A stretch of 64,000 bases of DNA from Ruditapes philippinarum (taxonomy: Eukaryota), in contig NW_026866227.1 of assembly GCF_026571515.1 (NCBI RefSeq), positions 1 through 64,000 of the forward strand, given 5' to 3'. Numbering within the stretch: the first letter of the stretch is position 1; each line of letters begins with the position of its first letter. Under the pieces are notes generated by a model, which had not been told where the DNA came from, did no database searches, and saw only the letters and a list, made by a program, of their open reading frames with translations. The position numbers were made by a program, and so were the translations under genes. This document shows, piece after piece, positions 28,011 to 54,605 of this stretch.

Positions 28011-30795
28011 ATATTGAAGCTATATAAAGATAGGCACCCATACATTTAGGTGCAAAAGTAATAAACAATTCTAACACGACTTGCATTTTTTCCTATTGGG
28101 CATAAAATTGAAAGTGTGTTATTATGCAAGAAAATCTCTGTTGGCGTTCTATATTAAGATATGTGAAGTAATCATTTTATGTTCGATGTAACCACTAAAA
28201 ATGCGACCCCCTGAAAATAAGTACGGAAACAAATCAGGCGCAATTTAACGTAGCAGTTGTGTAAGAATCAAAATAATATATCCAAATAGGTGATTTTATT
28301 GCTTGATAAAATCAATGTTTGTTGAGATGTGCATCATTATATCACTCGGGCTACGCCCTCATGATATAATTCCTCGCATCCAAATAAAGTTGTTTTTTTT
28401 TAGTGAAAATCACTGATTTGGATATATCATTTCTTAAATATAAGCAGGGCATAGTCTAGTATAATCTATTTCTCAAATACAGTGTAATTAAAATGACTGG
28501 CCAAGTTAATTTTATAGAGAAATATTTTTTGTTATGGGTAATAATCTCAAATATTGTTCACTATACATCCTTTGTAATTTTCATATGTTGAATCTCTCAA
28601 TCAGACGCATCGTGGAATATAGGAATATATTAGATATAGTGTTTTATGAATGTTGAAATATTCGGTTGTTATTCTATTGACTATGTGATGGTATTTACCA
28701 GAATACATGTATATATAGCAGTGTTACATATAACCTGTCTTAACTAACCAATTATAGTACCACATTTTGTGTTCACTTGATATTTGATACAATTTTTATG
28801 CATTTATGTTGATTATTCAATAAAAGTATAAGTACCATTGGTATCTCTTTCTTATATATCCATATATAACATACCCCTTACAATGTTAAAGGTTTGACGT
28901 TTTGGTGTCTGTTAAGCATCCATTTATCAAACTTGCCCTTCACCTCTGAGTTTGAATCTGCTAATGACTTGGGATTCTTATATGTGAAGAAGTTCTCCAG
29001 CCAGCTTACAGAACATCGGTGGTTTTACTCTGATGCCCTTTTATGCCTGAAATAATCCATGGAGATGCACTCAAGGCCTTCCTCCACCAGTAAAGCTGGG
29101 AAGTTGCTGTTTTACCTCTACTGTATTGGTGCAATGTATAAACCAAAAGAAAAGAGAATGAAAAATTGTTTGAAGATCAAAAATGTTTAGATAAGGTAAT
29201 AGACCCATTTACGAAACTACATGTACTTCATTATTCTTGAAAAACTAAATCACTCCCCGGGGTGGGAACATTTCATATGTGCACAAGTCTTAAATTTCTC
29301 CTTTTTTTTATATAGAGGTCTTGAAGGCAATATCTCATTCCAAATATATTAGCTTGAAGCATTATAGTCTTCAAAGCAATGTTATATGCTAAATATATAA
29401 GCATTATACATTTTGTAGTTTTCCACTCATAAGTTTACATTAGTGTATGACCCACTGGGCGGCGGAAAGTGTAACGTTTAGACGACTTCAATTTGATGCT
29501 ACATGCTAAATATTTAAGCTGTGCTTGGCAGTTGAGAAACAAAATATTTCCAAAATCTGTACATTATAAAAATCTACATAAACTTAGGGACCTCCAGGGT
29601 GTGACCAATTTTTATGTCAGAGTGATGATTTATGTAACTTTTGTAGAGGTTTACTTAACAAATTCTACATGCCAAATATCTAAGCTTTGTGCATCATTGT
29701 TTCACAGTATAAAACATAAATGTATTTTCCTATACAAGTCTTTTGTTAATTAAGTAACCCCAGAGTCGGTCCAATATTGACCCTACCTGAAATCCCCACA
29801 AAGAATTAAGGTCCTTGTAGGTTACAACACACTAAATATTTAAGATAGCAACAAATAAAAGATGCCATCAGAAAAGATAAGTTTAAAGTTTTGTCAATTG
29901 CAGAAAGTATGGCATACCAGCAACTATTATATATTCCACTGACATGTTTGGGAAGCATACATATTTGCCTAGAGTGAATAACACATGCACAAAGTGTAAG
30001 CAAAATCTTTCTGTTCAAATTACAATTTTAACCAAGATCTTTAGAACATATAATTTTCTCGTCTAGTGGATAGGAACATGGATAAAAGATGACACTTGCC
30101 GATATGATTTGTTAAATTATTCAAAGGCTAACTAGGACTTACATCTTCAAACAATATTTTGTTCATATTTTACAAGTAATGTCTTCGTGAAAAATGACTA
30201 TTGGAGGGGCCCTAAAACACAGATTTTTAACTCTAGTAAAGTCAGGATAGCAGACACTCTGATAAATCCTTTATTTACACATTTATGTGCAACAAATAAT
30301 CAATAGACAGTTCAACAGAGAAGTTAATTAAATAATGGGCTGTTGAAATTTAAACCAATACTTTTGTATATCACAAATAGGGCAGTCATATTTACATATT
30401 CTAAGAAAGCTGTTCTGAGTGATGATAAAATAGACAGCTATTGAAGTTAATTTGCACAAAATATTTACCATACATAATGGATTATTGATAAAATAACAAC
30501 TTAACAAACTTTCATATAATCATAATCAACATTAATTTTTTAATTTGAATTTAGCATTATTAACATTAAATAACACCAAAATTATTTAAAAGATACTTTA
30601 TAATCAAATATTTTTATTTCTTATTTCATGATAAGGTTTATTGTTTCAGAAATCGTATAATTATTATCCCTTACAACGTTATAAACATTAACAAATAATG
30701 TCATTAAATCCTTAAAAATGTCAATTCCAATTTGTACAAAATAGTATAAATCAGACAGTTTTAATTGACATTAAATCTTCTACAGATATATAATA

Positions 30796-31266
30796 CTAGG
30801 ATGTTTCAGTGTGAAATGTTTTAGTTTCCTCCTGGCTCAGCGGAATATTTCCAGGAGGTGCGACGAAATAATCTTCATCACGTTTCACTGCATTTTGAAG
30901 AATAGATTTTTTACATCCACCTTCTGTCACAATATCATCACGAAGCAGGAGTTCACGATCCTCTAACACTGAATACATAGGTTCTACATCGTCTGTATTA
31001 ACCATATATAACTGATTTGCATATTCTATAGCACTCCGCAACCTGTCTACACCTGCTTTATTATTCACCTCCACTAATGACAGTCGTTCAAGATGATTAA
31101 TCATTTCATCTGTAAGGTCTGGGACAGGAGGAAGATTCTTTGGGTTTATTTCCTTCCACTGGGGTTCATTTGGTATCTTGGAGTTTAAACAACAAACTCT
31201 CTGACCAAAGTTAACACTGCATAATCTATTTAGTCTCAACACTTTGAAAGCTATATTAAGAGCCAT
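30796..31266 (-). CDS. GATC: Glutamyl-tRNA(Gln) amidotransferase subunit C, mitochondrial (156 aa, intronless CDS)
   Basis: HLERLSLVE, AIEYANQL, VNTDDVEPMYSVLEDREL.LRDD.VTEG and EDYFVAPPGNIPL are GatC motifs. The N-terminus MALNIAFKVLRLNRL is basic and lacks acidic residues, like a presequence. ATG context aaacaATGg. Confidence 0.93.
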   Translation of the reverse strand: MALNIAFKVLRLNRLCSVNFGQRVCCLNSKIPNEPQWKEINPKNLPPVPDLTDEMINHLERLSLVEVNNKAGVDRLRSAIEYANQLYMVNTDDVEPMYSVLEDRELLLRDDIVTEGGCKKSILQNAVKRDEDYFVAPPGNIPLSQEETKTFHTETS

Positions 31267-31354
31267 TGTTTCAATAAACAAATTAAACTGCACACCAAAA
31301 AAGATTAAGATAGCAAAGTACACAGTATCAATGTTTTCTTTTTTAAATGTGACC

Positions 31355-32942
31355 TTAACCTTCAATTTCTTCTTCTTTGGCTTGCATTGCTCTGATCTCT
31401 GCTTTACGTATTTCTACTTTTTCCTGAAATCCCTGAAATAAAATAAAAGAGGAAACATGTAATAACCAGTATGATTCAGGATAAGACACAGCAGCATTTG
31501 TTGTTGTTTTATCCTGCTACTGTCTATATCATCAGCTGGATAAAGCCTTGCCCGATAAACTTATCTATCTCCGGTCATTTAGTCACATGATGACGTCACA
31601 TGTTAAGCAGCAAAAAGAAACTGCAAATAGATGCTATTTTATTAGGGAAAAAGAAGAATGAAACCATTTAATTATTCTAAAAACATGATAAAAAGCAGGA
31701 TTAATCAAATACATGGTTGATGTCGGGATGGAGAAAGTTTATCCGGTTCACGGCGCCAGTGAATCTTGGCTCGCTAAAGCTCGACAAAATACACTTTCTC
31801 GCTCACCGGATAAATCTTCTCCATCCCTACATTTTTTCTATATATTTTGTTGGTTGGGTTTTACGACACACAAATACAGTATAGGTCATGTGGTAACTTT
31901 CCAGAGAAGATCTCAGGTGCCATTCTGTGCATTATTCCAGGCACAAACGGGCACCTGAGTAAAACCGACCACATTCTGAAAGTTAGAGCAGTAATTGTAG
32001 AACCAGACTAAATGCCCAACAAGGTATTCCATAATGGTTCTGATTAAATATATAAGAAATTCCTTGATAATAAAAACAACAAAAAATAAGTTCATTGTTT
32101 AAATTTTTGAAAACTAACCTAACAGTTTATTTAGTTTGATTTGAATATGGTTTAAACATATTTATTTAAACTCGATTGCGAAACAAGTTCTTTCAACTTA
32201 TATTAATCACTTTCGAGTCCGCTTCCTGGAACCAACCAGTACTGGTGTCATATGAAGAAACATGGCCATGACCGGATAAGAGCTCAAACCAATGATCCAT
32301 GGGTTGAGAGGCAGACACCTAACCCACTGCTCTCCTTTAGTTTGAATATCAGCTACAAATAAAATGTGTATATTGTAATAATATTATAATATATAATAAT
32401 ATTGTAACACATGAACCGACATTTGTATTTATAAAAATATACAGTTACACATGAATTACACATGTTAAAAACAGTCAGTTTAGTTCAACAGGTAGATTGT
32501 TCAATAAGTTGGAATATGAATCAGGGGACCAGGGTTCTATACCCAGAATGTGCATATAAATATCATTTTCTTTGTGATATTTCAAGAAATCTTATCCATG
32601 GTCAATTGTACTGTCCCTCTGCTCTGGCAGAAGTTACCAGTTCCTTGCAAAAGTGAAAGTACTAATACTGGTTAACTGCCTGACAGTATACCTAGGAACA
32701 ATGCAGTGGCTCTGATGAATTCAAAGTGGCTTACAACTGAACTACCAACACCACCAACACATATTTTAAAGAAATACTGTTTTTACATCTGAATTAACTT
32801 ACTGACATGTTAAAGTTTTATAAATATATCTTACAGCAAGTGGTTTATATATACTGTGTGTAAACTGAGATCCCAGTAACATTGAAAACACTGCAGCTGC
32901 TGTTACTGTTAAATATCTTTTCCATGAAACTCCAGCAGGCAT
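31355..32942 (-). CDS. UQCC6: BRAWNIN / UQCC6 / C12orf73 (sloth2-like) microprotein, 61 aa, exons 32942-32835 and 31432-31355
   Basis: MPAGVSWKRYLTVTAAAVFSMLLGSQFTHSIYKPLA|GFQEKVEIRKAEIRAMQAKEEEIEG*. MPAGV start, hydrophobic helix and H..Y[KR]P match human BRAWNIN as I recall it. GT-AG phase-0 intron. Confidence 0.88.
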
Positions 32943-32989
32943 ACTTCAATCAAACTGTAATATAAAATTAATTAATCATTATTTATCCA

Positions 32990-34080
32990 TAAGATGTATA
33001 TGTATCTAATGAACTATCTCTGAGATGAATATGTATCTAATGAACTATCTCTGAGATGTAAATGTATATTATGAACTATCTCTAAGACGTATATGCATCT
33101 AATGAACTATCTCTGAGATATATATGTATCTAATGAACTATCTCTGAGATGTATATATATCTAATGAACTATCTCTGATATTTATCTAATGAACTATCTC
33201 TGAAATATATATGAATCTAATGAACTATCTCTGATATGTATCTAATGAACTATCTCTAAAATATATTTGTATCTAATGAACTATCTCTGAGATGTATATG
33301 TATCAAATGAACTATCTCTGAGATGTACATGTATCTAATGAACTATCTCTGATATGTATCTAATGAACTATCTCTGAAATATATATGTATCTAATGAACT
33401 ATCTCTGAGATGTATATGTATCAAATGAACTATCTCTTAGATGTATATGTATCTAATGAACTATCTCCGAGATGTATCTAATGAACTTTCTCTGAGATGT
33501 ATCTAATGAACTATCTTCGAGATGTATAAAAATGAACTATTTCTTCGATGTATATGTATCTAATGAACTATCTTTTAGATGTATATGTATCTAATGAACT
33601 ATCTCTGAGATGTATCTGATGAACTTTCTCTGAGATGTATCTAATGAACTATCTTTGAGATGTATCTAATGAACTATCTCTGAGATGTACATGTATCTAA
33701 TGAACTATCTCTGATATGTATCTAATGAACTATCTCTGAAATATATATGTATCTAATGAACTATCTCTGAGATGTATATGTACCAAATGAACTATCTCTT
33801 AGATGTATATGTATCTAATGAACTATCTCTGAGATGTATCAAATGAACTTTCTCCGAGATGTATCTAATGAACTATCTTCGAGATGTATAAAATGAACTA
33901 TTTCTTAGATGTATATGTATCTAATGAACTATCTTTTAGATGTATATGTATCTAATGAACTATCTCTGAGATGTATCTAATGAACTTTCTCTGAGATGTA
34001 TCTAATGAACTATCTTTGAGATGTATCTAATGAACTATCTCTGAGATGTATATGTATCTTATGAACTATCTGTGAGATGC
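32990..34080. repeat. Minisatellite of 25/31-bp units (ATGTATCTAATGAACTATCTCTGAG[ATGTAT])
   Basis: Dozens of tandem copies in the intron between the SMIM4 and BRAWNIN exons. Confidence 0.95.
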
Positions 34081-34593
34081 AGTTGTAAGACCAACACATA
34101 AATGATAGTCAATCATCTAAATTTTGTGAAACTTCTTGCTACATGAGATTGTTTGTTTCAGTTCCTGTTGATATGTAACATCATACCATATTAAACATTC
34201 TACACAAATCGAAACATTAACATTGATGATATTACATGACTGTACTGTATCATTTGTCTGTATCATTTGATTTGACTGTATAAAGTTGTATTCCCATGAG
34301 TGTTTATAATGGTTGTATACTTTACACAACACAAGTGATACTATTCCGCAGAACGGCACACTTCTGTACTTTATACATTTTGTGCATATCACATCATATT
34401 TACCAGCCAAAAAGTCTATATCCTTTATATAACATGTATATTTATATTCATCATTCATAAAATAAAAACAGTTAATATACCCTGAAATTGATTTGTAATT
34501 CTTACTTTTTAACCAATCACAGAAAAGTAACTATTTCAAAGATATTTATAGATAATATAATAATATACAATATGGACATACCTAGTGGACAGT

Positions 34594-35746
34594 TTATTTT
34601 TGAAATTTTAGCTGTGCAAATACTTTTTCTCTTAGTTTTTCTCGTTCTATCTGTTTCCAAGCCTCTTCTTCTACCTGTTTCCTTGTGTATGTTTTATCTG
34701 CAAAAATAAACATCATTGTCAAGCCCCTATTACTGTAACCCTCGTTCTGCTTGAACCTACTGTGATTAACTTTTGTCATCAGTATCGAGCCAGGCCAGCC
34801 TGCACCTCCGTGTAGTCTTACAAGGTTCTAGTCTGTTAGCCAACTTCAAATTTTCATTCTAATATTACCAAAAATAGATAGGCAGTTCCAAAAATGGAAG
34901 CTGGCAAAGCCCAGGAAATTCAGCAAGCCAAAAGAGGTATTAAGGAAGTTAGATTTTTATATCTTTTTATATTTCAAATAAAATGTTTAAATATCAATAT
35001 TCGTAAATATAAGAAAACACAGGTAGACATAAGTCTTATGATTTCCTTTCATTTATATTGTTTTTTTCATAATTAAATATTTAGAATCATATCAATTTTC
35101 ATCCTTACGCTTCTACATATCTATATTTATACTGCCATACATTATAATAGATATTTCATAACACTTACAAGATAAAGTTGCTTTTTCCCTTGTTTTTGTT
35201 TCTCATTTATACAATTAAGGAACTATGACAAACATAAATGAAATTATAAAGCATTACTTCACTATTTAAGTAAAGGTATCTTGTGACAACTTCATCACAA
35301 AATTAATTAACTGATGCTTATTGATTTGTTTCAAGTGACTAGTCACACCACCAACAATATACAATGTACAGTAATTTATAAGGTCGATGTCATATGATGA
35401 CTTAGATTAAAGACAACCTCTTTGTGCATTGTCTGACATCACTAACCTTCCATAAGATAGCTGGATAGCTTCCTCACATGAAAGAGTCAATATCTGATGG
35501 GAATTCAACCCATAGCAGTTTGGGGCAAGTGTTTTAAGTCAGCCATCTTAAGCAATTAGCTACATACCAGTAGGTCACACTTATCTTAATATTTCAATAC
35601 TTACAAAAGTTGTGACCATTCACAGTCCACTTGATCATAGCCAATTCTAAAAGAGCTCCATAAACAAAGAAGAATGGCATAAACCTGTAAACTCCTAGCC
35701 TTCTCTTGCCTGGTACTTTATTTAAGATGTTTTGTATGAAATGCAT
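34594..35746 (-). CDS. SMIM4: SMIM4 / UQCC5 (sloth1-like) microprotein, 81 aa, exons 35746-35605 and 34697-34594
   Basis: MHFIQNILNKVPGKRRLGVYRFMPFFFVYGALLELAMIKWTVNGHNF|YKTYTRKQVEEEAWKQIEREKLREKVFAQLKFQK*. VPGK.R.G.YRF.PFFFV.G..E..MIK...FY..Y.RK matches human SMIM4 as I recall it. Phase-1 GT-AG intron. The start could extend to in-frame ATGs at 36336 or 36366. Confidence 0.92.
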
Positions 35747-35859
35747 TATCTCATTTTTCCATCCTGAAAAAAGAGACATTAAATAAAATATAATTAATGA
35801 TTAAATTGTCAAATTAAGTAATCAGTGTATCAAACAACGATTGGAACATGTGACAAAAA

Positions 35860-36295
35860 GTTGCCCAAACCAAGGCCCAACATCACCTTGCCCTAACCTG
35901 ACTGTAGTGACATCATCTTGCCCAAACCTTGGTCTGACATCACCTTACCTGAACCTTGGCCTGATATCACCTTGCCCGAAATTACCTTGCCCTAACCTTG
36001 GTCTAACATCATCTTGCCCTAACCTTGGTCTGACATCATCTTGCCCTAACCTTGGTCTGACATCACCTTGCCCTAACCTAGGTCTGACATCACCTTGCCC
36101 TAAACTTGGTCTGACATCACCTTGCCCTAACCTTGGTCTGACATCACCTTGCCCTAACCTTGGTCTGACATCACCTTGCCCTAACCTTAGCCCATGTCAC
36201 CTTGCCCTAACCTTGGTCTGACATCACCTTGCCCAAACCTAGGTCTGACATCACCTTGCCCACACCTAAGTCTAACACCACTTTGCCCTAACCGT
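35860..36295. repeat. 27-bp minisatellite CCTTGCCCTAACCTTGGTCTGACATCA
   Basis: About 15 tandem units in the first intron of the SMIM4 unit; explains ORF 35841-36221. Confidence 0.92.
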
Positions 36296-36317
36296 ACGGG
36301 CTAGCTAATATACGTAC

Positions 36318-36400
36318 CTGCCGTGAATGATGTCATACGAGGTCTCGCGTGGCACCTAAATGTCATGGCCCACTGTGGTCGGCGTTATTGATGTTTTACA
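36318..36400 (-). promoter_or_regulatory. Putative exon 1 / promoter of the SMIM4-BRAWNIN-GATC unit
   Basis: Small CpG-rich patch ending in donor GGCAG|gtacgt (exon ends at 36318); matching acceptor tttttcag|G at 35763. Confidence 0.55.
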
Positions 36401-37204
36401 GTTAAAAAGGCAATTTTAATGACGGTATTAATATTTCGATACTTTAATTGGTATAGAACAATGTTAAAAGAATTGTTTTATTGTAAAATGCACAAGAATT
36501 GATTTGGTCAAGTGTATTTGCAAGTGAAAAATAAGGTTAAATCAACTTATGTTATTCCGTTTAGGTTTCGTAACGGGTCTAAACTTTAATGCTGCATCAG
36601 ATGACAAACAAAAATGTTAAATAGCGGCTTATAAAGTTTTAGAAGCCAGAACTACTTAGCCCCACGATAATAAGAGACAACAGGATACACCAGTCTAGGA
36701 TAATATTATATATCATTAAATATAAAAAAATATGGTTTTATAATGTCTTTTCTCATGATTAGCAATGTCACACGCCGAAATTTTGTGACATGTCACAATT
36801 ACATGATCATTTTTTTCTTCCAAAAGTAATGTGGGCGAATCGGGTGTTGGGCGAATCAAGAGTGGGGCGAATCATTTCAAAACAAACAAATTTTACTGAT
36901 TCACATCGTTAGTAGCTATTTTATTCTATAAAGCTGGTTAAAGATAAGCATTTAAGTAGATAAAAAAACTTAAATTTAAATTATAATGAAAACTTATTGA
37001 AGTTATAGATCTAGATCTATTTCACGGTTATGTAAATACATGCCTTCTTCGACCTTCGCAGCGATTACCTCCCTTAGCAGGCAATTTTCCGGCTTTTTTC
37101 CGTCAGTCTTCCGACGATGGTCCGATTGATCCGAAGACTGCCGGAAAGGACCGAAAAGTTGCGATGCAGCCAATAGGTCAGACTCTCGTATTGGTTTTTC
37201 CAAG

Positions 37205-38170
37205 ATAGAATAGAATAGAATAGAATAACTTTTATTTCCAATCAAGGGTCATGTTAAATGACATGTGAATCACAATAATAATAATGAGATCAAAGATCAA
37301 ATAAAGACGTTAAAGAAACTAAAACTTGATTCGTATTATAGTAACAACAATAAACTTAAAGAAAAAACAAAAACAAAACAAACACAGCAAATGACAGGGT
37401 TTCGCGAACTATAATTAAACATCATAACTACATATATATATATGAATTGAAAATTACATTTTGTTTTTATTCTTCGAATAACATTTAATTTACACAAACA
37501 GATAGCGTATACCTGTTTTGTAACAAAACTGTACAATACANNNNNNNNNNNNNNNNNNNNNNNNNNNNNNNNNNNNNNNNNNNNNNNNNNNNNNNNNNNN
37601 NNNNNNNNNNNNNNNNNNNNNNNNNNNNNNNNNNNNNNNNNNNNNNNNNNNNNNNNNNNNNNNNNNNNNNNNNNNNNNNNNNNNNNNNNNNNNNNNNNNN
37701 NNNNNNNNNNNNNNNNNNNNNNNNNNNNNNNNTGTTTTCTCATTACCATTTCTGAGTTTAAAACAAGTAAAAATAAAATCTACAAATTGTTTTATGATTT
37801 TTTCATCTTCGTTGCTCATTAACCAAATGAATTTGCTTATTTCAGACATTTTTTCAAAGTTTAAATTCTTATCTTTTATTTCACTATATAAAATGCTGCG
37901 TTGACTAGTAAAAGCATTGCAAGCAGTAACAAAATGTAGCTCGTCTTCAACTTCATTTGAGTTGCAAACTTCGCAAACTCTTTTATCAGACTTGATTTTT
38001 TTTATATCTCCCAATCTCTATTTGTAATTTGTGAGAACTTATCCTTAACTTTGTAAAACAAGCTCTAATATTTTTATCTTTGATTACTGCTAAATAAGGT
38101 TCCCTACAAAAATTTGTTTTAAACAGTGCATAAGTACGTAGTTTACAAGGTATGACTAATTACCGTTCAC
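37205..38170 (-). mobile_element. 3' end of a non-LTR retrotransposon (CR1/L2-like), frameshifted, spanning the assembly gap
   Basis: LRTYALFKTNF..EPYL, LRISSHKLQIE and RVCEVCNSNEVEDELHFV..C; AATAAA plus (ATTCT)n tail at 37205-37235. Confidence 0.8.
37541..37732. other. Assembly gap (192 N)
   Basis: Run of n. Confidence 1.
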
Positions 38171-46340: not shown

Positions 46341-47996
46341 ATGAGTGGAATACAAGAATTAGAACGAGACAATCGTCGTACTGTCACCGATCCACATGGA
46401 TGTCATGGTATGGTGGTAGCTGACTCAGGAAGTCGTAATGCCCTACAATCGTCTTATCATGGTACAACTACCGTTGAAACTAATGATGAATCTAAGCTGA
46501 ATCTTGAGCGAAAATGTGTGCCACTAAAATTCGAAACATCATCATGGTGTGATGAAAGGAAAAGGGAACTTCAATCTACTGAAGGTAAGTTTCAACTCAA
46601 TCTCATTACCCCTGCTAATGTACTTAGTCTTTTGATAGTATGTTTTATTAGATTTGTTGCAGTCTCTTTATGACACACAATTGTTTTAAGTAAAAGAACT
46701 AATCAAGATTAGAGAGGACCAAATACTTATTAACTTGTTACACAAATTAATTCACTTATAACAAAATCTAATGTCGGTATTAAAATGAACCCATAACAAA
46801 TAACATGCCACTAAGTACACATTCAACTTTGTTTTCTAGATGAAAGACCTTTACGCGATTTCCTGTGTCGAGCCATTTCAAAGAACGCACGAATGATTGC
46901 CGTTGACCTAGATGTGTCCAATTTGTTAGACCATCTTTTATCCAAATACTGCATTACTGAAGATGAATACAACGAGCTCCGTTCTTTGGATAAGTCCAAG
47001 AATCTTGCTAGAACCGTATTAGGATTAGTTTTAAGAAGGGATTGTCGTACACTGCTGTCCTTCATTGACATCATTTTCGAGTGTGGTGAGCATATAGCTA
47101 GTAGTATCACGGTCGCATATGATAGCATCGTCAACAATGCAGACTCCTCACGTGCTGAAACAGGACGATCATGCTCGCACTGCCTTCTGCTAGAAAGGAC
47201 GGAGCCTATTTTAATTATCGATTCACTGATAAGCCATGACTATGAAATGTTTTTGCCATTTTACGAACAAGTTGCAAACTGCAGGGATAACGTTCCAGAG
47301 AAGAGAAAGGAATGGTGGGATAACTTTATGACGCATGTCATGAAGGTCGAGGCTTCAGCAGAGATGACACAACTAATTATAGAAGCTCTAGAAGAGTGTA
47401 GATTCCACTCGGATATTATAAGGAACCTGCGTGAGGACCAAAGCAAAAATGTTAACAGCTTTCTGTGCACACATATCTGCAGTGTGGTTTTGAACTCTAG
47501 TCCTCGGGCTGAAGACGAAGAACATGGACCACGGATGCAAGAATTAAAAGTTGATTATGAAAACACCAACTTGAGAATGTTTCAACGAACAACAATATCG
47601 TCTAAGGTCAATGTGAAGAAGATGCACCATCTAAAATCATTTGATTTGGAGAATCTGCCTGACGACCAAAGACACGCTGCCAACCGTTTCATGTATAGAT
47701 ACACACACAAGTCCAGTCGAAGTACTGAAGAAAACATAAATGAACCACGGATGGAAGAATTAAAAGAATTTGATTATGAAAATACTAATCTAAAGATGAT
47801 TCAAAACGCAACGGGGTCGTCTACAGTCACGGCAAATGATATGCAAGAGCTGATACCGTTTGAGTCAGGGTCGGGTGACAGAATGGGGCATCGTTTTGAC
47901 GACAGCAGGAATAGACAGGGTGGTGAAAACGCAAATACTAGGGAAGGTGATCACAATGAGTTAACGCAGTTAACACTTATTTTTGTATTTTGGTAA
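46341..47996 (+). CDS. Death-fold (tandem CARD-like) protein, exons ~46341-46584 and 46840-47996 (~466 aa); 5' end uncertain, possible extra exon from ATG 45890
   Basis: G|gtaagt donor and ctag| acceptor in phase 1. IAVDLDVSNLLDHLLSKYCITEDEYNELRS...ARTVLGLVLRRD..LLSFIDII fits a CARD helix pattern. A second, weaker unit reads TEPILIIDSLIS...WWDNF...LIIEALEEC. Confidence 0.7.
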
Positions 47997-53112: not shown

Positions 53113-54605
53113 ATGACGGAATCTAGGACAAAGTACAGTCGATGGATGTCCGACTTACCACAATGGATAACCTTTGTACCGATCAGTTGTTTAGCAATTC
53201 CAGGTTAGTCTGTTTTTATGTCAACATGGTAGCGTTATTGTCCTTTTTTTTCTTGTAAACATCTTTACAATTTTTCAATGTCTCTTTTTAATATCTTTGT
53301 AACATGCAGTGTTCTGTGTGCAGTAATATTACGAAATACTTTAATATTATCTTTATTGTTATAAAACTTTTTAAGGGCGGCCTCCATGACCGTGTGATAA
53401 AAGTAACATCCCTCGCTGCTGTGGGTTCGAATCCCATCTTAGACTTCGTGTATTGAACCTATCCAGATAATGAACGAACGGTCGACGCCGTTCGTGCCGG
53501 AAGTAATGTACAGAGAGACACCTGTTGTCTTTATCCATCCGTAAAGATATTGCCTTTTCATTATAGTGCATTAATTGTCTATGTGGCTTAAACCCCGATC
53601 AGGTAATACATTATATACTTAACTAAAGTGTGCACTACTTGCAAGTGTATTATTGAAACGGTGATCGTTCTGTCTCTGTTTGACATTTAGTAAAATGCAC
53701 TCATGGTTGTTTGAAATATTTTAACAGGGTCCCATAATTCCGGCACAAGTGACCTTGACCTGACCCTTGGAACAGCTGTCGACCAAACTTCCGGCGTTAG
53801 AAGGTTAGGAAACACGTGTTGCGGCCAGCGTGTTGTGCACAGATGGTCCAAGACTCAGAATCTCAGCATTATGGAACAATTGCACGCGGGAGTTAGATAT
53901 TTTGATTTCCGGGTTGCTGTTCATCCAGACACCATGGAGTTTAGATTTGTTCACGGGCTATATGGCGGTCTGGTACCACTAGCTTTACAAGACATTAACA
54001 CATTCCTAAATCAAAATCCATACGAAGTTGTCATCTTAGATTTTAATCATTTCTATAACATGAACCAAACTGCGCATAATATGCTTCTTACTGAAATACG
54101 TAATGTTTTTGGACAAAAGTGCGTGCCTCCACCATTCTCAATCCCGAACTATAAAATGTGGGGTACAAGTCTTGCGGCGCTATGGCAGACACCATACCGG
54201 GTTATAGCTATATACCACGATGACAACATCATTCAGTACCCGGAAATCTGGACTGCGAGCACGATAGAAGCCCCGTGGGCAAACACAAGTGATATAGCTG
54301 CTCTGATAAGATTTCTAGAATCAAATTACTCCAACAAAATGAGGTATAAGAATGACTGTCTATATTCCTGGCAGGGTTTACTCACTCCAAATTCTAAGAA
54401 TATAGCGTTTAATCTCGGCTCTAGTTTAGAGGAGAGAATGGCGTCTAAAGCTACCCGCGAGTTTGTAAAATGGCTGAACGGCGGGAAAGTTCCAGGACCT
54501 CAGGGTATTAACATATGTAATGCTGACTTTGTAGAGAAACACAACTTTATTCAGACAGTTGTCGGTCTCAATCAATATATATCGGAAGTACCATCTACAT
54601 TTTAA
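53113..54605 (+). CDS. PI-PLC X domain-containing protein (PLCXD family), 322 aa, exons 53113-53203 and 53728-54605
   Basis: WMSDLP...LAIPG|SHNSG, WSKTQNLSIMEQLHAGVRYFDFRV, FVHGLYG, FLNQNPYEVVILDFNHFY and INIC.ADFV; both catalytic-type His present; phase-1 GT-AG intron. The paralogue (PLCXD1/2/3) cannot be assigned. Confidence 0.92.

Follow-up and report, generated by a model that had tools for sequence, protein, structure and literature searches.

Animal mRNAs that stay polycistronic are, to our knowledge, rare, and those carrying three unrelated ORFs are rarer still. In the spliced-leader operons of nematodes, tunicates, and chaetognaths, pre-mRNAs are trans-spliced into monocistronic mRNAs; we know of no description of spliced-leader trans-splicing in molluscs. 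Members of the SMIM4/UQCC5 family are microproteins of ~70-80 aa with one hydrophobic helix that function in complex III assembly. Cytochrome b is among the mitochondrially encoded proteins whose translation requires GATC, and complex III is assembled around it by SMIM4 and BRAWNIN. In Drosophila, sloth1 and sloth2 (SMIM4 and C12orf73/BRAWNIN) form a bicistronic gene (Bosch et al., eLife 2022, PMC9681215). Linked SMIM4/BRAWNIN architectures were also found in choanoflagellate, sea squirt, and lamprey (PMC9681215), so a linkage in a mollusc is expected; that paper makes no mention of GatC. The original prediction knew of no described version with three genes. Our literature search agreed, but a dicistronic mRNA of Drosophila DNApol-gamma35 (PolG2) and GatC (PMC5753349) and a tricistronic animal mRNA, the capped silkworm uENF1-uENF2-PP mRNA translated by context-dependent leaky scanning (Kanamori et al., JBC 2010, PMC2978622), are known.

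The window analyzed here comprises 64,000 nt of Ruditapes philippinarum DNA and contains genes for SMIM4, BRAWNIN, and GATC in this order on the minus strand (Table 1). The lengths and coordinates predicted for the three ORFs (81, 61, and 156 aa) were reproduced in a joined model, and all modeled junctions of the predicted splice chain, from the donor at 36318 to the acceptor at 31432, were GT-AG, with pyrimidine tracts at the AG acceptors. Recomputation returned the same spacers, namely 24 nt between SMIM4 and BRAWNIN after splicing and 88 nt between BRAWNIN and GATC.

Table 1. Features of the SMIM4-BRAWNIN-GATC locus, with positions in the window.
Feature	Position	Strand	Remarks
SMIM4/UQCC5 ORF	ATG 35746, stop 34594-34596	minus	81 aa, joined model
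BRAWNIN/UQCC6 ORF	ATG 32942, stop 31355-31357	minus	61 aa, joined model
GATC ORF	ATG 31266, stop 30796-30798	minus	156 aa, joined model
Candidate non-coding exon 1	36318..36360	minus	Donor CAG/GTACGT
Exon 2	35605..35763	minus	Two tiny overlapping uORFs (ATGgaaaaATGAgaTAATG), then SMIM4 codons 1-47
Exon 3	34582..34697	minus	SMIM4 C-terminal part and stop, 12 nt, then donor
Exon 4	32835..32954	minus	12 nt linker, then BRAWNIN codons 1-36
MITE-like repeat	31560..31832		~273 bp, high-copy, within BRAWNIN intron
Terminal exon (exon 5), start	31355..31432	minus	BRAWNIN codons 37-61 and stop
BRAWNIN-GATC spacer	31267..31354	minus	88 nt, within terminal exon
GATC CDS	30796..31266	minus	156 aa, single exon, Pfam GatC
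3' UTR	30600..30795	minus	AATAAA at 30637-30642 and 30613-30618
Further AATAAA	30270-30275	minus	Beyond 3' UTR stretch

The gene identities were confirmed by Pfam matches, all over the curated cut-offs. The exon 2 piece of SMIM4 matched UPF0640 (PF15114; 70 bits, cut-off 27, E = 1.6e-19) over profile positions 5-49 of 67, the exon 4 piece of BRAWNIN matched DUF4516 (PF14990; 62.6 bits, cut-off 27, E = 2.6e-17), and GATC matched GatC (PF02686; 42.1 bits, cut-off 23, E = 9.7e-11). The SMIM4 protein contains the hydrophobic stretch MPFFFVYGALLELAMI, and a role of the clam protein in complex III assembly is inferred from its family (PMC9681215). BRAWNIN relatives numbered 76 among 1.84 billion representatives, mostly with the N-terminus MPAGVSW. 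The GATC protein was 78% identical to a Mercenaria mercenaria 'glutamyl-tRNA(Gln) amidotransferase subunit C, mitochondrial-like', and its first 30 residues are basic and without acidic residues. That the three genes are adjacent by chance, or that one ORF is spurious, is very improbable; only the small ORF size would speak for it, and it is opposed by the Pfam matches and by the recurrence of order, strand, and tight spacing on three contigs described below.

A search of the 1.4-Gb genome returned one copy each of SMIM4, BRAWNIN, and GATC and no retrocopies of any of them. The genome's own annotation lists GATC (P0117) alone, and it seems to lack both microprotein genes; a full-length R. philippinarum SMIM4 protein was also absent from the protein database. 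Two products of run assemblies nevertheless matched the modeled exons. A 61-aa database protein (P0115) was identical to the BRAWNIN encoded by joined exons 4 and 5, and P0116 was identical to the C-terminal part of SMIM4 at 58/59 positions, reading NF/YKTY across the exon 2/3 junction. Since the genome is without a retrocopy, these intronless sequences must come from spliced RNA. In the Mactra antiquata annotation, SMIM4 and BRAWNIN are merged in one CDS (P0167).

Four run- or metagenome-derived GATC ORFs of the same species cluster (P0001, P0118, P0119, and P0120) all ran upstream through the spacer into the 3' end of BRAWNIN, collinear with the genome. The longest contig of BRAWNIN P0115 and the sole contig of GATC ORF P0119 were both 1170 nt, and BRAWNIN/GATC pairs on equal-sized contigs recurred in related bivalves, with P0121/P0004 at 955 nt, P0137/P0008 at 1650 nt, and P0162/P0025 at 1499 nt, the last pair also having sources common to both. 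These four matches compared with 0.56 expected by chance (P = 0.0017). Another contig, L050, is likewise 1499 nt long, which is a meaningless size coincidence.

The same layout was found on metagenome contigs from other bivalves (L007, L008, and L009). L007 (1014 nt) opens with 102 nt of intron-like sequence, after which the final exon of SMIM4, an unsplit 61-aa BRAWNIN, and GATC follow, with gaps of 45 and 109 nt between them. It is without the two introns found at those positions in the window and L008, and we infer that it is cDNA-like and RNA-derived. L008 is genomic and carries all three genes in order, with the GT donor directly at the SMIM4 stop codon and with a spliced spacer of 22 nt and a second one of 255 nt, free of AATAAA and ATTAAA. 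In L009, also genomic, a 112-nt gap separates the last BRAWNIN exon from the GATC behind it. The BRAWNIN-GATC spacer thus ranged from 88 to 255 nt across four taxa, and the layout was preserved in lineages resembling Venerida, Myida, and Unionida. The proposal that GATC lies on the transcript of BRAWNIN gained indirect support from the equal-sized contigs in four taxa and the cDNA-like L007. From these two lines, we infer that a mature RNA carries BRAWNIN and GATC; SMIM4 is probably on that RNA as well. The locus is likely a conserved polycistronic unit of bivalves, in which a bicistron of the sloth1/sloth2 type was extended by GATC; it would be a nuclear unit that serves three mitochondrial proteins and is conserved in heteroconch bivalves.

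A quite unlikely alternative is that one primary transcript is processed in different ways and that the resulting monocistronic or bicistronic mRNAs are the translated forms. The spacer contains an acceptor-like CAG with a pyrimidine tract at 31288. It precedes the GATC start codon by 21 nt and keeps the frame of exon 4, so that splicing to it from the exon 4 donor would produce a BRAWNIN(1-36)-GATC fusion. However, all four GATC ORFs of the species keep the genomic sequence across this putative acceptor, so that its use as a trans-splice acceptor was not found in them either, although a minor trans-spliced form may occur; the fusion was seen in 0 of 114 GATC relatives, and L007, L008, and L009 do not have such motifs at a conserved position. 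A polyadenylation route at the AATAAA across the SMIM4 stop codon (model 302-307), 12 nt before the donor, would also fit such processing, as would the contig of P0116 (1026 nt), which equals no GATC contig in size, and the 'isoform X2' GATC proteins listed by NCBI in several molluscs.

Poly(A) signals bear further on the number of transcription units. AATAAA was present at all three candidate positions predicted after GATC. The spacers had been described as free of AATAAA and ATTAAA; this holds in that no hexamer lies wholly inside either, but not at the edge of the first, where the AATAAA noted above overlaps the SMIM4 stop codon. Hexamers of either type also overlap the BRAWNIN stop codon in L007 and directly follow it in L009, and two AATAAA lie within the GATC CDS (model 721 and 809). 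These hexamers at or near upstream stops and in the GATC CDS would suit two overlapping but separate units, in which the final intron or exon of BRAWNIN holds a start site for GATC, polyadenylation of the SMIM4-BRAWNIN transcript takes place in or beyond GATC, and the assemblies merge the two. Short-read contigs do merge overlapping transcripts and render internal starts and early poly(A) sites invisible, and the listing of GATC alone in the genome annotation points the same way. We consider this arrangement unlikely. The hexamers carry little weight because six AATAAA occur in the AT-rich 1271-nt model, the short spacer and the layout kept across three lineages argue against separate units, and a 5' UTR beginning in the intron would hold several upstream AUGs.

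In favor of separate units, a patch of near-normal CpG content with a TGACGTCA is found 300-550 bp from the GATC start codon on its 5' side. No second TGACGTCA occurs in the locus, and this one sits in the MITE-like repeat, for which the genome returned 593 first-look candidates, many with ~90% identity. The patch is a dispersed repeat and is not conserved, its counterpart being absent from L008 and L009. No private GATC promoter was seen, as this repeat makes up the sole patch with CpG and CRE ahead of GATC. Within the locus, only 36201-37200 is CpG-rich, and candidate exon 1 lies at the edge of this stretch. This exon holds an in-frame upstream ATG, with which the first ORF would be 93 aa. 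An upstream exon is also needed for SMIM4 in L008 because an acceptor directly precedes its SMIM4 ATG.

The polycistronic unit could be read as follows. The ancient SMIM4-BRAWNIN bicistron has an intron just after the SMIM4 stop, leaving the ORFs 24 nt apart once spliced, and GATC lies in the terminal exon of BRAWNIN, 88 nt past its stop, and would lack an independent transcription unit. One promoter near 36.3-37.2 kb may serve all three genes. For SMIM4 and BRAWNIN, translation might proceed as in the fly, through leaky scanning or reinitiation, and low-level translation of GATC may come from reinitiation after the two short ORFs. Simple leaky scanning is made less obvious by the A at -3 in the start context of SMIM4 (ataATGc) and by another four AUGs within SMIM4, ahead of the BRAWNIN AUG. 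The GATC start context (acaATGg) is the strongest Kozak among the three ORFs; scanning or reinitiation to it would be unfavorable because 12 AUGs and two ORFs (81 and 61 codons) come before it.

The locus would join two steps of one pathway, mitochondrial translation and complex III assembly. If the unit works as outlined, the supply of GATC for mitochondrial Gln-tRNA(Gln) would be tied to that of the two factors receiving new cytochrome b, and expression could be stoichiometric or co-regulated without an operon-resolving mechanism. A tricistronic RNA that is real and translated would also be a natural system for reinitiation after ORFs of 61-81 codons.

Compared with known systems, the locus resembles sloth1/sloth2, with the same two families, order, and strand and a short intercistronic gap (24 nt here), and the reading of SMIM4 and BRAWNIN as a bicistron was supported. 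The fly gap is 5 nt without an intron, whereas the clam gap is spliced, its intron lying 12 nt past the SMIM4 stop and, in L008, 0 nt past it. The clam locus also has GATC as a third ORF unrelated to the other two. The likeness to DNApol-gamma35/GatC is that GATC would share its mRNA with a further nuclear gene that serves mitochondrial biogenesis, but the partner differs, being PolG2 in Drosophila and SMIM4-BRAWNIN in the clam. Of 57 metagenome animal contigs, 12 showed a GATC-PolG2 layout; on these arthropod-like contigs, as in Drosophila, GATC comes before PolG2, here as the 5' ORF at a distance of 6-55 nt, whereas it is the last ORF in the clam. The arthropod parallel suggests a repeated loss of independent transcription by GATC. 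Tentatively, and with less confidence than in the conserved unit itself, GATC may be a serial hitch-hiker without its own promoter, preceding PolG2 in arthropods and following SMIM4-BRAWNIN in heteroconch bivalves, where the trio would be translated by reinitiation from one capped tricistronic mRNA. The silkworm mRNA similarly has three separate ORFs with related roles on one animal mRNA; its ORFs are paralogous cytokine precursors whose translation was demonstrated, whereas the third clam ORF is unrelated to the first two and translation in the clam is putative. Spliced-leader operons share with the clam locus several genes under one promoter, a putative one in the clam, but their RNAs are cut apart, whereas the assembled clam RNAs retain the intercistronic spacer.

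The exon chain that underlies the original prediction was reproduced in full: the coordinates, the GT/AG junctions, the gap lengths and the identities of the three ORFs were all as claimed. Each acceptor combined a pyrimidine tract with AG, and each donor was GT. Database searches were run per exon or with the BRAWNIN protein P0115 as query (for the BRAWNIN exon, the genomic 47-aa ORF took the place of the 36-aa exon piece), while the joined model of exons 1–5 served for ORF bookkeeping and local comparison with fetched loci. Searched exon by exon, all three genes exceeded the curated Pfam cut-offs: UPF0640/SMIM4 at 1.6e-19, DUF4516/BRAWNIN at 2.6e-17, and GatC at 9.7e-11. Each occurs once in the 1.4 Gb assembly, and the nearest named relative of the GATC protein was Mercenaria mercenaria GATC (78% identity), which points to a venerid-like clam. 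SMIM4 and BRAWNIN are separated by 24 nt (12 + 12, spanning a splice), and BRAWNIN and GATC by 88 unspliced nt. The locus has a single CpG-richer stretch, and candidate exon 1 sits at its margin; use of this exon would extend ORF1 to 93 aa via an in-frame ATG. The claim that the spacers lack poly(A) hexamers was borne out in part: one AATAAA straddles the SMIM4 stop, and two more lie within the GATC CDS. Because AATAAA occurs six times in the AT-rich, 1271-nt model, these hexamers weigh little either way.

Features of the window, paired database proteins and GATC-PolG2 contigs
Feature	Position or size	Strand	Remark
Exon chain	36318 / 35763-35605 / 34697-34582 / 32954-32835 / 31432	minus	splice-site reading
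ORF1 SMIM4	ATG 35746, stop 34594-34596	minus	81 aa; joined model
ORF2 BRAWNIN	ATG 32942, stop 31355-31357	minus	61 aa; joined model
ORF3 GATC	ATG 31266, stop 30796-30798	minus	156 aa; joined model
Two minimal uORFs	35744-35762		5' end of exon 2
Acceptor-like CAG	31288		
MITE-like repeat	31560-31832		BRAWNIN intron
Minisatellite	32992-34079		31-bp units, ~38 copies; intron between SMIM4 stop and BRAWNIN
Minisatellite	35861-36293		27-bp units, ~11-16 copies; intron 1, directly downstream of candidate exon 1
CpG-richer stretch	36.2-37.2 kb		
Run of 192 N	37541-37732		~1.2 kb upstream of candidate exon 1
ORF, 758 aa	41557-43833		no Pfam match
Long ORF, CARD match	46893-47996	plus	
Long ORF, PI-PLC X match	53835-54605	plus	
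BRAWNIN P0115 / GATC P0119	common contig size 1170 nt		window's own species cluster
BRAWNIN P0121 / GATC P0004	common contig size 955 nt		
BRAWNIN P0137 / GATC P0008	common contig size 1650 nt		
BRAWNIN P0162 / GATC P0025	common contig size 1499 nt		JGI and Logan given as sources for each
GATC-PolG2 contigs	L010:83-1677, L011:103-1615, L015:15-1529		also L016, L017, L021, L027, L051, L054, L056, L057, L058

Elsewhere in the window, one long ORF matched Pfam CARD weakly (7e-06) and an NPHP3_N-like NTPase below the cut-off (0.002), which suggests a putative gene of the innate-immunity type. Another gave a weak match to the PI-PLC X domain that fell short of the cut-off (0.002).

At the RNA level the evidence is indirect and draws on proteins predicted from assemblies of public runs. 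Word-index searches returned one candidate per microprotein. P0115 (61 aa) exactly matched the join of exons 4 and 5, and P0116, the SMIM4 candidate, was identical at 58 of 59 residues across the exon 2/3 join. Both proteins are intronless and the genome holds intron-containing copies alone; they therefore derive from spliced RNA. Four GATC ORFs from the species cluster of the window (P0001, P0118, P0119, and P0120) were collinear with the genome upstream of the ATG through the spacer, three of them extending into the 3' end of BRAWNIN, and none used the acceptor-like CAG ahead of the GATC start. The Logan contigs for P0115, P0116 and the GATC ORFs measured 1170, 1134, 1139, and 1026 nt, of which 1026 nt belongs to P0116, and the JGI contig of P0118 measured 1466 nt.

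The BRAWNIN protein P0115 was found on six contigs, the longest of 1170 nt, and P0119 on a single contig, likewise of 1170 nt. Together with the further BRAWNIN relatives found with P0115 as query, four BRAWNIN/GATC pairs shared a contig size, against 0.56 expected under a jitter null (P(4 or more) = 0.0017). A chance match also occurred, as metagenome contig L050 is 1499 nt long by meaningless coincidence. The equal sizes are thus indirect evidence that BRAWNIN and GATC lie on one RNA.

Metagenome contigs were scanned for animal GATC alignments, which yielded 57 loci. Three of these contigs (L007–L009), along with the paired database proteins, were nearest to Venerida, Myida, and Unionida by GATC similarity. 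The genomic contig L008 (8.1 kb) contains SMIM4, BRAWNIN, and GATC in this order; its SMIM4 stop lies directly on the donor (TAG followed by gt), the spliced SMIM4–BRAWNIN gap is 22 nt, and the BRAWNIN–GATC gap of 255 nt is free of AATAAA and ATTAAA. On L007 (1014 nt), the first 102 nt resemble the 3' end of an intron and are followed by the last coding exon of SMIM4. A complete BRAWNIN of 61 aa, uninterrupted by an intron, comes after a gap of 45 nt, and a further 109 nt separate it from a GATC that runs off the contig end. The assignment of this first exon to SMIM4 draws on its YDVYRKK motif, an intron phase equal to that in the window, and BLASTP, which matched it weakly (E = 0.016); Pfam gave no match. 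Because L007 lacks the two introns present in the window and L008, one following the SMIM4 stop and the other within BRAWNIN, we read it as a probable partly processed transcript, the alternative being a genome that has lost both introns. A literature search on the dataset of L007 gave no match. The DNA of L007 and L008 aligns in GATC alone, which leaves the comparison of intron positions as the basis for reading L007 as spliced. The genomic contig L009 shows the last BRAWNIN exon with an AATAAA immediately after the stop and GATC 112 nt downstream. Alignment of four BRAWNIN–GATC spacers yielded no common motif that would indicate a conserved element. In the annotation of Mactra antiquata, SMIM4 and BRAWNIN exons are joined into a single CDS, and GATC lies on the chromosome that carries it. 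Single CDSs of 109–121 aa joining an SMIM4-like sequence to BRAWNIN were seen in the public annotations of P0167 (M. antiquata KAL4226605.1) and of P0142 and P0198–P0200 (Neodiprion 'sloth2'); these may be mis-modelled bicistrons or real fusion isoforms.

The main rival holds that the genes form overlapping but separate transcription units, whose transcript ends would be invisible in short-read contigs. The sole CpG-normal patch with TGACGTCA upstream of GATC is a MITE-like repeat of ~273 bp with internal inverted repeats and a perfect TGACGTCA, present in hundreds of genome copies at ~90% identity. As this promoter-like patch is a dispersed repeat, absent from L008 and L009, a conserved internal GATC promoter is less likely and we rejected the patch as a candidate; we regard separate units as unlikely. 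A single transcript resolved by alternative processing appears still more doubtful; no BRAWNIN–GATC fusion protein was found among the GATC relatives. The proposal of one tricistronic mRNA gained partial support from the coding splices, the BRAWNIN/GATC contig matches, and the three-gene layout of L007 and L008; this support is indirect, and separate units stand as its rival. We consider it fairly likely that SMIM4, BRAWNIN, and GATC form a polycistronic unit conserved in bivalves.

In the best-supported reading, a single promoter upstream of exon 1 would give rise to a spliced mRNA of ~1.25 kb carrying all three ORFs. Two minimal uORFs (MEK-stop and MR-stop) precede SMIM4 and are linked to its start through stop/start overlaps, ATGA and TAATG (ATGgaaaaATGAgaTAATG). 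On L008, three out-of-frame ATGs immediately precede the SMIM4 ATG. By fly precedent, SMIM4 and BRAWNIN might be translated through leaky scanning (PMC9681215). GATC is unlikely to be reached in this way past the 12 AUGs upstream of its own, which has the best start context of the three ORFs (acaATGg); we prefer low-efficiency reinitiation following the two short ORFs as its candidate route. The SMIM4 stop lies 12 nt upstream of one exon junction and 132 nt upstream of the next, and one may speculate that RNA stability could depend on downstream translation.

The sloth1/sloth2 architecture, in which the Drosophila SMIM4 and BRAWNIN orthologues share an mRNA, has been described for a choanoflagellate, a sea squirt, and a lamprey as well as for the fly, in a paper without mention of GatC (PMC9681215); the clam pair is an expected new member. 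Our literature search found no paper linking SMIM4 or BRAWNIN to GATC in the sense of a shared transcript, in agreement with the original remark that no described three-gene version was known. Tricistronic animal mRNA is already known from silkworm (PMC2978622), and Drosophila GatC is part of a dicistronic mRNA with DNApol-gamma35 (PMC5753349). Of the 57 metagenome contigs with animal GATC, 12 carry the gene for PolG2, the mitochondrial DNA polymerase accessory subunit (DNApol-gamma35; match to solved structures, 8e-52), downstream of GATC on the same strand, with a gap of 6–55 nt in the three contigs examined in detail. These contigs are of the same type as the Drosophila dicistron, with GATC first, and this arrangement appears to be widespread.
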